From Cercozoa sp. M6MM (Eukaryota > Protista > Endomyxa: Ascetosporea), in assembly GCA_040357565.1 (NCBI GenBank), contig JBDODJ010000023.1: a stretch of DNA of 64,000 nucleotides; one strand, written 5' to 3'. Position numbers and translations under genes: made by a program. Of this stretch, positions 5,263 through 17,325 are shown one piece after another. Position 1 is the stretch's first letter, and each line of letters opens with the position of its first letter. The notes under the pieces were generated by a model, which made no database searches, was not told where the DNA came from, and saw only the letters and a list, made by a program, of their open reading frames with translations.

Positions 5263-7588
5263 CTAAACATTCGAGCGCCGCGTTCGCGGACCCCGCTGCG
5301 CCAACTTGTTGGCAGACTGCCCTCGGTGATGCAGATAGTCACCAAAGCAAAGATATACAGGAGCACAGAGCAACGGAGTGTGTACGTGGGCCGGATGTCG
5401 AGCGCACCAGGTCACCATTTGCTTCATGTCTGTCAGGAGCAGCTTCATGGCTCGCGTCCATTCGATCTCGTCTCTGTAGAGTGCGTGAATGCCGCCTATT
5501 GTCTTTTCTCTGCGGACAACAGTGGTGGATACACACATACACAACGACAGGATGCAGGTGCAAAGAAGCACACCTCAGATCGATCGGTGCTGCCAATGTG
5601 AGACCATCAAAGTGCTCACTTAACTCAGCCACAGACACGAGGAGCGCGAACAGTGCCTCGTTGAACGCGCGCGTCCTACCCGCAAACAAGTATTCTACAC
5701 CCTTACTCCCTGATAGTGAATGACACACCAAAACACACGACTCAGACTGAAATCAGTCGACACGTTTAACTCCAACAGTCCTACAAGAAAAACCAAACTC
5801 ACGAAAGAAAGGTGTGCAATTTGCAAGTGTACGGTTGTTGCCCTGCATGCGCATTTTTGAGAAACTTCCCAGCGGAACCGGGTCGTACTTTGTGAATCTT
5901 AAGTCTGCGAACACACAGATGCATACTAATACAAAAAGTAACCCAAGGAATCCCGTACCTCGACTCCGTGCGAGAATGTCGAGCAGCAGCACAGTCTGTA
6001 TCAAGGAAAAAACAATAACAGGCATGTGGAAAAGTGTTCCCAAAAGTGTGACACCTCGCCCAAAGCAGCGTTAATTTCGCTCCAATCCACTGGCTGTGCC
6101 GGTAGTCGTCTGTGCAGACAAAAACTTTACACAAAGGTTTAAACCGCAAAGAGAGCCGAGGCTACCCAAGTCGGTAATTGTTGATCATGCCAAAGTGCGC
6201 ATCGTGATCAATGTGCAGAAGGTCGTCCAGGGCCTACTCAGAAAAGCAAACATAGAACAGGTGGTACCTTATGGACAAACAAGAAAAGCTACATCTGTTC
6301 GACGCAGCAAGCGCAGTTGTCTTTCGGCGGCTTTCACTCCATGGTCTGCTGCTGAAGCCTGGGGGACAAGAGATATAACGAGGTAAACAGATAGAAAAGT
6401 AGAAAAAAGTGCTACTTGATGCCGCAACGTGGTGGCTTCGGCATCGCACATGTTGGCATCTCGTACCAACTGTTCAGACCACGATTACAATGTTAAAACA
6501 GCCAGAAAAAGTAAAAAGGGCAGAATACCTCGTTTTCCACAGCAGCAACTTCTGCGTCGATTTTGTCCAACTAAAAATGAAAGCGATCGCACCGCACAGT
6601 ACAAACACAACGAACACTTACTCGAAGCGACTCATTTTGAAGTGCTTCACGTTCCTGCAAAAGCTCCTGTAACTCTTGAGTCAACTCGCGCTCTTCGCGA
6701 CAAAGCGCTTCGAATTCCGCTATAGTGCAAAACTCGAGTTGCAACACAAAACAATCCAGACAATTAGTTACCTTGCTCTGCAGGCGTGTCACGGTGTTGC
6801 TGCAGTCGCTGCGCCGCTTTACGGAACTCGCGCGCAGTTTCTTTCAACTCCTAAGTTTCCGCGCGGATACACATAAATATAAAAACAAACAAAATTGCAA
6901 AAATAAATAACACACACGCTCGCGAGCTTGCATAATGTTGAGCGCTCGTTGTGCGCAGCCTTGGCACAGCGGGAAGTTGATTCTGCGCCAAAGAAGTTGA
7001 TAAAACGTGAGGTCGTATGATCGGTCTGGTGACTCAAAGCAGTACTGTGAGACATCGGCAGCCACTTGTTGCAATGTGTCTAGCGCCTGCAGTTCTTGAA
7101 ATATCAGTTTTAAACAAAGCTTTAAGCTTCCGGCACCTTGATCTGCGTGGACCAGTCGGCGGTTTTATCGTCAGCTTCTGTCTCGTCTGGCACAGCAGAT
7201 GAGAGATAAGTCAGCACACCCAAAAGCATATGTGTACCCTCCTTTTCTGCGTGATTGCTAACAGTGTCAAGACTTTGCGCATTCAGCATCGACTGAAGGA
7301 CAATGTAGCTCTGCTCCAAAGCCGAGTTATCCCCTCTGCACACGCACGCAGAAAGGACAACATATAAGCAACAGAAGGAACAGATTCCGGTCTACCCAGC
7401 AGAGCGAACAACGGCGGCGATTTCGTCGACGGCATTTCGTACACGGCGCACGTCATCTACATTGACAGGCTTGCAAAACCAGAACAACCACGAAATATCC
7501 ACAAGTTTTTACCCTCAGCCGGACTCGCCTCCAGCATCACGCCAATATGCGCCTTGCATCGATTGCAGCAGCATACTGCCTCAGCCAT
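5263..7588 (-). CDS. ATG6: Beclin-1/ATG6 (Vps30)
   Basis: N-terminal CNRC; INFPLCQGCA; coiled coil; HFGMINNYRLG; VDWSEINAALG; C-terminal WTRAMKLLLTDMK. Confidence 0.9.
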
Positions 7589-14235: not shown

Positions 14236-16496
14236 CTATCTGTTGCCCGAGTTGCTGTTCGGCGGCGTGACTTTGCCTGCAACACCCATCAATCAATCCA
14301 ACTTAGCAACCCCCCCCCCCCGTTAGCAGAAGGAGTAAGAGTGCCGTACCCTGTAACGACTGCAGCAAGGCCGTGCACACCTCCGATTTTCGGAAGCGCG
14401 GGAACAGGTCGTGCTGCATGATCTGCACCACCTCTGAGAAGGCCGGCTCGAACGCATTGTCGTGCATCAGTCGCGCCGTCAGCGCACTATTTCGCCGCGA
14501 TCGAATCGGCGACACCGAAGGACTGTACACAGATACCAGTGTGTTACGTTACGTTACATACACCTAAAACTCATAGAGGCATATGCAAGCATGATACCTG
14601 GCCACCATGTCCGTGCTACTGAATGTGAAGGAGCCCTCCGATTCCGGTGTCGAACTGTGCATATCAGTCCCATATCACATATATACATATACACAGAAAG
14701 AACAATATACACAGGCGACGGGCTGTCCTGGAAGCGTCGGATCAGCACCTCGCGCGACGCGTGCGAGATATTGATCGGCCTGTCCACCCAAACCATTAGC
14801 ATCCTGCAAGGAGGCCAAAACATACGAGCGCGCGTCGTGCGGAATGTAGTCATCAAAGATGCGCCACGCCTCTTCGACACGACGTCGCACCTCCTGTTGT
14901 CCCATCACACCATATCCCTCTCTATCTGGACAGTACTGCTTTCCCAGCTACGAGCACTACCTTCACTGCACTCCAGCGTGTCACGTCGCGGTAGAACATG
15001 AGATTCTCCGATGCCAGTTCACGTGCCATGAACTGTGCCACCCCGAAAAGTTATAACTCAAGCACCTCCTTTCTACTCCAATGACACAAAACTGCCAACA
15101 CACCAACTGGAAGTACGACAGGCAGCGTGCGTCTTGCAGGAAGTCGAAGAAGTGGTCGTCGCGCAGCAAATTCTCTGTCTCCGACGGCGGCACTTCGCTG
15201 TCCATCTGCAAGCACCGGCACCAGTAGTTACACGCATAACAGAGACCTCTACGATAAGAAACACGATAAGAAAGGTCAGGCTACCGACAGACTCGACAGC
15301 GTCGACGCGAGCGACACGCGGCGCGTCGACAACGACGACGGTCCTTCCTGCAGGCATATATACACCGATACACCGATAGTAGGACCACTCACAAAACCCT
15401 CGCCTACCGAGGCCGGGTCGTCCGACGTGTGCAGCGACACACTCAGCGCGCCCGAGCTCTTGCGCGACCGCGATCGGTACGACAACTCCGTGCTTGCCGA
15501 GTGTCGCAGCGCTCTCGTTTTGGTCGAAGGCGACACGTTTCGTCTGCGTACGAGATACGCACCACAGTCACCCGAGATAGATAGTAAGCTACAAACAAAG
15601 GACGGTAGAACAAGCTCTACGCTTTTCTGCGAAGCAGTCGGCGGCGGAATTTCTTTTCGTGCTTCATTTGCTCCTCGGCCATCAAGCAACCGCAAATGTT
15701 AAGCACTTCCTTCCTGCAGGCACATTATACACAATGTTATTTGCAGATATCATATTGGTGGTACATTTAGACACAGATATCGTACAGTGAGAAGGCGATA
15801 CGCGGCGTGAACTGATGCGGCACCGTCACTTTGAGTGCATCGCACAGCGCCTGCACAAAAAGACACCAGTACACACAACCCCAACACAAGAGGCACAGAT
15901 ATAAGAGCCCACATCGGTGAGGTGCGCGTAGGCAGCCACAGGCAGGTCAATGTTGGCGTGCAGGCGACCGACCTCCTTGACACGTGCGTCCAGGTGCTCC
16001 AGATCAGCGAGATTCTGCACGAACGACGACAGCATGTGAATTAGTCGACTCTGTGCAGTACAAGACACACATAACTTACACAGCCTACTTTCTAAAAGAA
16101 CGAAAGAATGAAACGTGCGAAAAGCCTACCATCTGCGCTTCAGCGCGCTGGCGGTTCGAGCTGCCGTCGGTGCCAAACACCGACAGATACTCGGGGTGCG
16201 CCGAGAACAGTCCATTGTACAACTCGAGCGCGATTTCCTGTCCGCATAGATACAATCCACGGCCACGCACACAAGAGCACGAGGAAACACAGGGTACCGA
16301 GCGTTTCTCCTCGACCACGTCAAACCAAAAGGTCTGAACGACCTGTACGATCGTATACTTGTCGCCCTAACAGCAGAACCGGCTTGGCCCGTTTACAACA
16401 ACAGCCCAAATCTAAAAGGATACAAAATACCTCATCAGTTATCACATGCGTGCCCGCAAGCTTATCCGCAAGCCCGGTGCTCTGCTTATTGCCCAT
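14236..16496 (-). CDS. Predicted N-myristoylated globin-RGS fusion protein
   Basis: Starts MGNKQS. Globin: VQTFW, ELYNGLFSAHPEYLSVF, AEAQMSRL, VKEVGRLH, FTPRIAFSLKEVL. RGS: YFQLFMARELASENLMFY, AWRIFDDYI, PINISHASR, AFEPAFSEVVQIMQHDLFPRFRKS. Joined through GT-AG introns. Confidence 0.85.
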
Positions 16497-17325
16497 GTTG
16501 CCTGGGACAAATAAATTACTTGTATTTCAACCAAAAATCCCAATGAGTCACCAAAAAAACAACAACCACGCAAACCACGAACATGCATCTAAACTATCAT
16601 TGGGACACACAATCACTACGCAAACAATGCACTCACGCCATGCCACACGCGCACGGCTCTGTTCTAGTCGCTGAAACTCACCGAGGCGCAAAGGATCCAC
16701 GCTATTTCGCGTCGAATTTCCCGGACAAGCCTTGTCTGTAGTCCTATTAATACGTTGTGGTAAGTCTTGAATCGCTGTAAAGTCGTTCCACAACAACGCG
16801 CTGACCTGCCCGTTCAGATCGCACAACAGCCGGGCACTGGAGATGAGATCTCAATCAGTGGTCAGCTCGTCTCCCAGCACGGAGGCGTTTAACCCATGCA
16901 TCCCTATCCTTGGAAGTCAGGCAAGCGTTTTACACTGCCCAAAGTCTCGTCAGGTGCCAAGTTCACATCAGCCTACTAGTGGTCCACCGCACACCGTTTT
17001 GTTTGGAGCCTGCCTCCGTTGGTGGTTTGGCGCCGTGATCTCACACAACGACGAACAGTTCTGGAGACCGAGGAGTGTCGAGAGCATAAAACTCCCTGCG
17101 TTAGAAATGCTTCTCCCGTCCCGCGACGTTTAACCCGTAGCTGGTACCCATTAGCTGGTACCCATTAACAGTGACACTCCGAATGGAGTACATTGAGCGA
17201 GCCAGGCCCACTGTAGGTCCAGCTGCACTATTTGCAGCAACCACACGCTTCGAGTGATTGTAACAGGGTAGGAATTTGGTGGTAACTACTCAAATCAGTT
17301 TTTCGGGGTTGGGAGTTCACGTCAA

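Follow-up and report, generated by a model that had tools for sequence, protein, structure and literature searches.

Can the state of a haem decide how long a heterotrimeric G protein stays active, with no receptor in between? The question is raised by one gene in a 64,000-nucleotide stretch of contig JBDODJ010000023.1 (C23; hereafter the window) from Cercozoa sp. M6MM, whose assembly (GCA_040357565.1) comprises 23.6 Mb in 2,235 contigs. A first-pass annotation, made from the letters of the window, had read this gene as a membrane-anchored globin joined to a regulator of G-protein signalling (RGS) domain. Haem gas sensing and heterotrimeric G proteins have so far been linked indirectly, or by way of the debated binding of neuroglobin to Giα. 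Strain M6MM is an amphizoic marine amoeba from fish gills, a member of Apofilosa (Rhizaria), whose formal name is Lemnamoeba sinaloensis following its description in 2026; the papers on M6MM and L. sinaloensis mention neither globins nor RGS proteins (PMC11069148, PMC13746701). We conclude that globin and RGS domain almost certainly belong to one real protein, and we rate that protein as a new combination of two known families, an F-type globin and an R4-like RGS domain. That the globin governs the output of the RGS domain is a more tentative reading, weighed below against its rivals.

The globin-RGS gene model

The gene runs from a start ATG at window position 16496 to a TAG stop at 14238-14236 and comprises 15 exons with 439 codons plus the stop, so that the single minus-strand gene proposed earlier for 14236-16496 is upheld by consistent splice phases and by identity to a database record. 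Read from the splice sites, every intron is GT-AG and 46-79 nt long, and the boundaries originally drawn for the globin exons, from 16366 to 15713 onward, prove exact (Table 1). At exon 12 the donor (GTATAT) sets the exon end at 14711 and not 14713, which keeps a serine-rich stretch and exons 13-15 in an open frame. All 15 exon pieces match record P0003 residue for residue (MES1908599.1, 439 aa, "hypothetical protein"), one of four annotated isoforms of gene MHM6MM_001505 and a member of the 90% cluster of P0002. Full-length searches used P0003 and, for the paralogue described below, P0001; the spliced model itself was queried one exon at a time.

In the funannotate pipeline, multiple isoforms derive from transcript assemblies. 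Globin, linker and RGS domain are all spanned in every one of the four annotated isoforms of MHM6MM_001505; the genome paper states that the M6MM annotation drew on transcriptome reads together with funannotate train/update. Isoform P0004 begins at Met81 and is missing globin helices A to D. Exons 7 and 8 contain no methionine at all, and their frame is set by splicing from the globin exons. It is because these linker exons carry no methionine that we take the globin-RGS protein to be a real fusion, a conclusion that the gene structure makes close to certain.

Globin, linker and RGS domain

On P0003 the Pfam Globin profile (PF00042) scores 42.2 bits against a cut-off of 22 (E 1.3e-10, residues 50-152). 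The domain is hard to see piecemeal: the same profile on exon 4 alone is weak (E 0.016), exon 4 alone or as a three-row profile finds nothing significant in the PDB, and a six-frame Globin scan of the whole genome returned no match because the exons are short. Against PDB sequences the N-terminal half matches the Ralstonia eutropha flavohaemoprotein (1cqx, E 2.8e-5) and neuroglobin (E ~1e-5), followed by the globin domain of a bacterial nitric oxide (NO) synthase, Hell's Gate globins and Vitreoscilla haemoglobin (Hb). An AlphaFold2 (AF2) model was built for the paralogue from a two-row alignment, and its globin part is usable, with predicted local distance difference test (pLDDT) values of 60-85 across the domain. 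In that model helices A to H form a 3-on-3 sandwich, which Foldseek superposes on Vitreoscilla Hb with a template modelling (TM) score of 0.84 and a root-mean-square deviation of 2.2 Å and on neuroglobin with TM 0.79-0.84; TM scores to Vitreoscilla Hb, neuroglobin and Hell's Gate globin range over 0.79-0.85 across 132-146 columns. The structural neighbours of the globin in the ESM Atlas are clusters of flavohaemoproteins and NO dioxygenases (TM 0.78-0.81).

The roles of haem-pocket positions B10, CD1, E7, E11, F8 and G5 in flavohaemoglobins are general knowledge. Aligned by BLASTP with E. coli Hmp (the protein from NC_000913), the window globin places Phe66 on Hmp Phe43 (CD1), unchanged in the paralogue, and the other five positions as listed in Table 1. 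The tyrosine of exon 3 at B10 also aligns with the B10 tyrosine of Cerebratulus neural Hb. Gln80 is assigned to E7 by helix register, BLAST having put a four-residue gap there. Glu162, 50 residues past His112, falls at what we take to be the position of the H23 glutamate of Hmp. The complete 3/3 globin with a TyrB10/GlnE7 pocket that the first-pass annotation had claimed is thus borne out by Pfam, by the Hmp alignment and by the model of the paralogue, as are the individual motifs it named: MGNKQS, Trp36, Tyr52, HPE, Phe66, Gln80 and His112 in GRLH. By its pocket and its nearest structures the globin is of the F family (flavohaemoglobin-like) and not of the S family, and we predict that it very probably binds haem.

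The C-terminal domain is also recovered at nearly its whole length. Pfam RGS (PF00615) scores 54.4 bits on P0003 against a cut-off of 23.9 (E 2e-14, residues 267-417) and covers profile positions 4-113 of 117, while on exon 14 alone it is weak (E 0.0016). PDB matches of the C-terminal half are led by RGS5 (E 3.5e-9), with RGS5, RGS16 and RGS2 at E 1e-9 to 1e-7 and RGS8 and RGS4 also present, and for this domain an ESM Atlas model of the paralogue superposes on an RGS2 cluster at TM 0.83. Glu289-Asn290 correspond to the Glu-Asn pair of SEENxxFW, a motif of R4-family RGS proteins, and Asp407 and Arg411 are the counterparts of the D-x-x-x-R Gα contacts in the last RGS helix. In RGS4 numbering the Gα contacts are Glu87/Asn88, Asn128 (catalytically important), Asp163 and Arg167, and the role of Glu289-Asn290 as contacts is taken from the RGS4-Giα1 structure. 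The RGS domain assigned earlier to about 15170-14370 is therefore complete by Pfam coverage, its contact residues align, and its motifs ASENLMFY, PINIS and DLFPRF are all in place. By these alignments it is R4-like, closest to RGS2, RGS5 and RGS16, with the Gα contact residues kept, and we think it probable that it is an active GTPase-activating protein (GAP).

One region departs from the R4 pattern. A Ser/Pro-rich insertion (35% Ser+Thr) sits between the halves that match known RGS structures; PDB and Pfam RGS alignments split at paralogue residues ~295-380 and 428-458, and exon 13 is 44% identical to its paralogous counterpart. Because of this insertion, one annotated isoform set mis-reads the region.

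Between the two domains lies the basic, Ser-rich linker noted in the first-pass annotation: a +9 polybasic stretch at residues 166-182, directly after the globin, then a segment with 32% Ser/Thr. It appears disordered (pLDDT <40 in the AF2 model of the paralogue), and the motifs common to both paralogues (RALRxS, RKxSG and RRVSLAST) hold conserved serines of the basophilic-kinase type.

At the other end of the protein, MGNKQST in both paralogues fits the pattern G-{EDRKHPFYW}-x-x-[STAGCN]-{P}. The window ATG has an in-frame stop 11 codons to its 5' side with no ATG intervening, in the paralogue a stop codon immediately precedes the ATG of MGNKQST, similarity between the two copies starts exactly at Met1, and isoforms P0003 and P0005 begin at this methionine. 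The records P0002 and P0001 add unrelated residues upstream, 9 and 49 of them respectively, by way of a predicted 5' intron. Both copies have an acceptor-like site just 5' of the ATG (at 5 nt in the window gene and 0 nt in the paralogue), which more likely belongs to a conserved intron of the 5' untranslated region than to coding sequence. The MGNKQS methionine is the probable translation start, and Gly2 is predicted to be myristoylated. The basic patch may help membrane binding, and myristate, basic patch and kinase-type serines together suggest a reversible, possibly phosphorylation-controlled association with the membrane. Of the earlier term "membrane-anchored", then, the myristoylation consensus stands and is conserved in the paralogue, but "anchored" is too strong for a protein with no transmembrane helix (maximum hydropathy 1.04 in P0003) and no cysteine for palmitate.

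Table 1. Coordinates of the globin-RGS gene, its parts and related loci (window positions unless a contig or locus is named)
Feature	Position	Strand	Basis or remark
Exons 1-5	16496-16431, 16366-16298, 16237-16130, 16050-15913, 15850-15786	minus	splice sites and phases
Exons 6-10	15713-15621, 15543-15408, 15347-15285, 15205-15104, 15032-14961	minus	splice sites and phases
Exons 11-15	14893-14826, 14779-14711, 14654-14598, 14522-14350, 14276-14236	minus	splice sites and phases
ATG and MGNKQS, N-myristoylation consensus (Gly2, Ser6)	16479-16496	minus	conserved in paralogue
3/3 globin domain, residues 23-165 (exons 2-6, introns included)	15665-16366	minus	Pfam, PDB and structure matches
Tyr52 (B10) codon	16217-16219	minus	on E. 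coli Hmp Tyr29 by BLASTP; invariant in paralogue
Gln80 (E7) codon	16133-16135	minus	on Hmp Gln53 by helix register from Leu84; invariant in paralogue
Leu84 (E11) codon	16044-16042	minus	on Hmp Leu57 by BLASTP; four residues after Gln80
His112 (proximal His, F8) codon	15958-15960	minus	on Hmp His85; invariant in paralogue and decayed third copy
Tyr122 (G5) codon	15930-15928	minus	10 residues past His112, as Hmp Tyr95 past His85; invariant in paralogue and decayed third copy
Linker, residues 166-255	15179-15664	minus	composition, charge, conservation
RGS domain, residues 256-427 (exons 9-14, introns included)	14350-15178	minus	Pfam, PDB, Atlas
Glu289-Asn290 codons in ASENLMFY	15003-15008	minus	aligned to 'seenlefw' of RGS5/16
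Asn330 codon in PINIS	14770-14772	minus	aligned to N of 'kevnidh' in RGS5/16; invariant in paralogue
Asp407-Arg411 (DLFPR) codons	14396-14410	minus	aligned to 'dslprf'/'dsyprf' of RGS5/16/2; invariant in paralogue
Ser/Pro-rich insertion, ~45 aa, residues 345-390	14459-14727	minus	splits RGS alignments
Intron 11, 46 nt	14780-14825	minus	read through in P0002 and P0005 sequences
Upstream intron-like stretch	16503-16588; L015 4768-5199	minus (window)	gene models add upstream coding exons there
Full paralogue (P0001)	G000:C4:5200-7440 (locus L015 5200-7440)	plus	73% identical protein
Decayed fragment of the C4 copy	G000:C133:7471-7665 (L016 about 5470-5800)	minus	indels and TGA stop
Protoglobin PF11563 matches	G000:C547:3797-4484, G000:C2:289003-289314	plus	69.7, 50.1 and 59 bits

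Paralogue, genomic setting and distribution

The paralogue P0001 carries every exon in the same order, from the MGNKQST start through globin and linker to RGS, and scores 44.5 bits for Pfam Globin and 56.4 bits for Pfam RGS. In its gene a single exon corresponds to exons 7 and 8, exon 9 has no methionine, and an extra intron lies within the counterpart of exon 14 (L015 7216-7261). Its introns hold long (TG)n runs (L015 6064-6110 and 6750-6857). Over all aligned codons the proportion of differing synonymous sites (pS) between window gene and paralogue is 0.65, and the duplication is old because silent sites are saturated. Differences at nonsynonymous sites (pN) remain few in the globin (pS 0.72, pN 0.10), the RGS domain (pS 0.62, pN 0.09) and the N-terminal exon (pS 0.65, pN 0.10), and are more frequent in the linker (pS 0.55, pN 0.31). 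This pattern of substitution indicates that both domains and their layout are kept by purifying selection since the duplication. A decayed piece of the C4 paralogue, which starts at the end of exon 3, reaches exon 5 and has no RGS part nearby, is probably a pseudogene remnant.

Genome-wide, we counted 63 Gα exon matches, spread over at least 18 loci, and RGS matches number 33 at about 20 loci; heterotrimeric G-protein signalling looks expanded for a genome of this size. With at least 18 Gα loci, substrates for the RGS domain are therefore present. At eight RGS loci the 1.5-kb flanks were examined and contain no globin. Strong Protoglobin (PF11563) matches elsewhere (Table 1) mean that globins of the S family occur in the genome too, separate from the F-type one fused to RGS. 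The only HisKA-like match in the genome (G000:C385:8694-8807, minus strand) scores 23 bits, below its cut-off. Open reading frames flanking the globin-RGS gene in the window are uninformative, giving faint TPR matches only.

Searches for the same architecture elsewhere led back to M6MM. A HMMER search with a 46-aa exon-4 profile against 1.84 billion representatives, limited in reach, found only two M6MM proteins (P0002 and P0001), and word-index searches with the whole protein, the globin part and the RGS part, limited for divergent sequences, found the same two. Contigs of Joint Genome Institute metagenomes gave 569 pattern matches, none confirmed, again with limited reach for divergent sequences, and a feature search of the ESM Atlas with the whole protein gave no usable match. 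Full-text literature searches (globin with RGS, chimeric globin, globin-coupled sensor with heterotrimeric G) turned up no description of a globin-RGS fusion, and RGS and G proteins are both absent from a review of globin diversity published in 2020 (PMC7475203). The first-pass annotation knew of no described globin-RGS architecture, which agrees with what the literature and protein searches returned.

Candidate functions and known relatives

What might such a protein do? In the reading we prefer, the myristoylated protein would be held reversibly on the inner side of the membrane, close to acylated Gα subunits, its RGS domain would speed GTP hydrolysis on one or more of these subunits, and the state of the haem (O2-bound ferrous, NO-oxidised ferric or unliganded) would alter the reach of the RGS domain to Gα or its action there. 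Because an F-type pocket binds O2 tightly and NO oxidises it to the ferric form, one concrete version of this proposal is an NO/redox switch, in which the passage between oxy-ferrous and ferric states would be relayed through the H helix and the polybasic linker. We give a probability of roughly 0.45 to the prediction that the state of the globin controls RGS output, and so provides a receptor-independent gas or redox input to G-protein shut-off. If true, O2, NO or redox state would set the lifetime of active Gα without a receptor. The boldest form is doubtful by our own estimate: that M6MM provides the first globin-RGS protein from nature, a membrane-associated haem sensor of O2, NO or redox state gating Gα deactivation without a receptor, perhaps acting both as GAP and as a neuroglobin-like ferric guanine nucleotide dissociation inhibitor (GDI), and perhaps part of a lineage-specific set of globin-linked signalling proteins. 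In any case the fusion extends the known output domains of globins and the known input domains of RGS proteins, and it is a natural experiment in which haem pocket and RGS domain are wired together in a small soluble protein, suited to spectra and GTPase assays.

Several observations weigh against this preferred reading. Retention of intron 11, in P0002 and P0005, shifts the frame so that the RGS domain loses its second half. The nine extra residues of P0002 would bury Gly2. Myristate alone binds membranes weakly, and there is no cysteine near the N-terminus to carry a palmitate. In the AF2 model of the paralogue the RGS half has pLDDT <50. The Protoglobin profile reaches 16.6 bits on P0003, below its cut-off of 25, which marks the globin as other than an S-type sensor globin; F-type globins are best known as NO-dioxygenase enzymes, and classical globin-coupled sensors use S-type globins. 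Finally, conservation rests on two paralogues in a single species, and no orthologue was found outside the M6MM genome in searches of limited sensitivity, which leave absence elsewhere unproven.

A serious rival is that the protein is a tethered NO dioxygenase, which would remove NO or other reactive species locally while the RGS domain and the lipid anchor mainly place it, or while the RGS domain works constitutively and independently of haem. The pocket retains the full flavohaemoglobin set (TyrB10, GlnE7, LeuE11, HisF8, TyrG5 and a glutamate near H23), the nearest neighbours of the globin, among solved and predicted structures alike, are flavohaemoproteins and globins of the NO-dioxygenase family, and NO dioxygenation is widespread among globins (PMC3820574). 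However, the protein has no reductase domain, a globin covalently fused to a signalling domain usually denotes regulation, and the fusion has been retained in both paralogues since a duplication whose age shows in the saturation of silent sites. We consider an enzyme of this kind unlikely.

The globin might also act on Gα itself. Under this alternative the protein is a double off-switch, a functional analogue of RGS12 and RGS14, whose RGS domain is the GAP while its globin is a redox-dependent GDI that holds Gα-GDP. There is precedent in ferric neuroglobin, which binds GDP-bound Gi/o and inhibits GDP release (PMC4842972), and in both sequence and fold neuroglobin ranks with the solved structures closest to the window globin; yet identity to neuroglobin is only 17-20%, and the GDI activity of neuroglobin is limited to some mammals and needs a few surface glutamates (PMC4842972). 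A double off-switch seems improbable on these grounds. Equally improbable is a globin fold kept without gas sensing, whether as a sensor of haem availability, a module for dimerisation or lipid binding, or a scaffold that regulates the RGS domain without haem. Some globins do respond to lipids (PMC11203436), but all residues that hold or face the haem are present here and invariant between the paralogues, and the globin is counted as the most constrained part of the protein at pN 0.10. It is highly improbable that a neighbouring globin gene, with its stop at the TAG overlapping the exon-6 donor, was wrongly joined to an RGS gene: unspliced intron 6 does give an immediate stop in both paralogues, and exon 9 of the window gene does begin with ATG, but the paralogous exon 9 lacks that methionine, exons 7-8 are conserved as protein in the frame spliced from the globin, the inter-exon gaps are intron-sized (46-79 nt) with no space for a promoter, and four transcript-informed isoforms all cross the junction.

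The preferred reading, control of RGS output by the state of the globin, has a parallel in the globin-coupled sensors HemAT, DosC/YddV and AfGcHK, prokaryotic proteins in which the ligand state of the haem sets the output. They likewise carry an N-terminal globin and a C-terminal signalling domain in one chain, and the window protein has this layout, with its globin at residues 23-165 and its RGS domain at 256-427. Their globins are S-family (protoglobin-like), whereas the window globin is F-family and falls short of the score that defines the S type; the output domains that they carry are, to our knowledge, of the MCP, GGDEF, kinase or cyclase kinds and never RGS. Eukaryotic globins fused to signalling domains also exist, such as the seven-transmembrane receptor-globin GLB-33 of C. 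elegans and the globin-adenylate cyclase HemAC-Lm of Leishmania, but their partner domains are other than RGS, and neither is known to act as a GAP.

Taken separately, each half of the protein has known counterparts. With E. coli Hmp, Vitreoscilla Hb and R. eutropha flavohaemoprotein the globin shares its fold and TyrB10, PheCD1, GlnE7, LeuE11, HisF8 and TyrG5, at an identity to flavohaemoglobins of ~18-22%; in contrast to flavohaemoglobins, the window protein has no reductase for flavin and nicotinamide adenine dinucleotides (FAD/NAD) and carries instead a signal for lipidation, together with a disordered linker and the RGS domain. The R4 proteins RGS2, 4, 5, 8, 16 and 18 are the best matches of the other half and have the Glu-Asn, Asn and Asp/Arg contact positions in common with it, but they are small and have a short amphipathic N-terminus, whereas the window RGS domain carries a 45-aa insertion and sits behind a globin.

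Metazoan Globin X is an N-terminally acylated membrane globin (PMC7475203), with myristate on Gly2, palmitate on Cys3 and no output domain, whereas the window protein has an RGS domain and no Cys3. The PDB sequence matches also include HGbRL of Methylacidiphilum infernorum (3wfw, E 5e-4), in which an F-type globin is fused to a Roadblock/LC7 domain, of a family implicated in GTPase regulation (PMC4476040); it is bacterial, and its partner domain is other than RGS. Human neuroglobin in its ferric form is a GDI for Gi/o (PMC4842972, PMC3820574), and so offers a globin acting on heterotrimeric Gα in one redox state only (PMC4842972); that interaction is non-covalent, of the GDI and not the GAP kind, debated and species-specific, whereas in the window gene the link to G proteins is hard-wired by fusion. 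RGS12 and RGS14 each combine two Gα-acting modules in one chain, the second being a GoLoco peptide and not a haem protein, a likeness that is functional only and that holds only if the globin is a GDI. The nearest conceptual relatives of the globin-RGS protein are neuroglobin with Gi, Globin X, HGbRL and RGS12/14.

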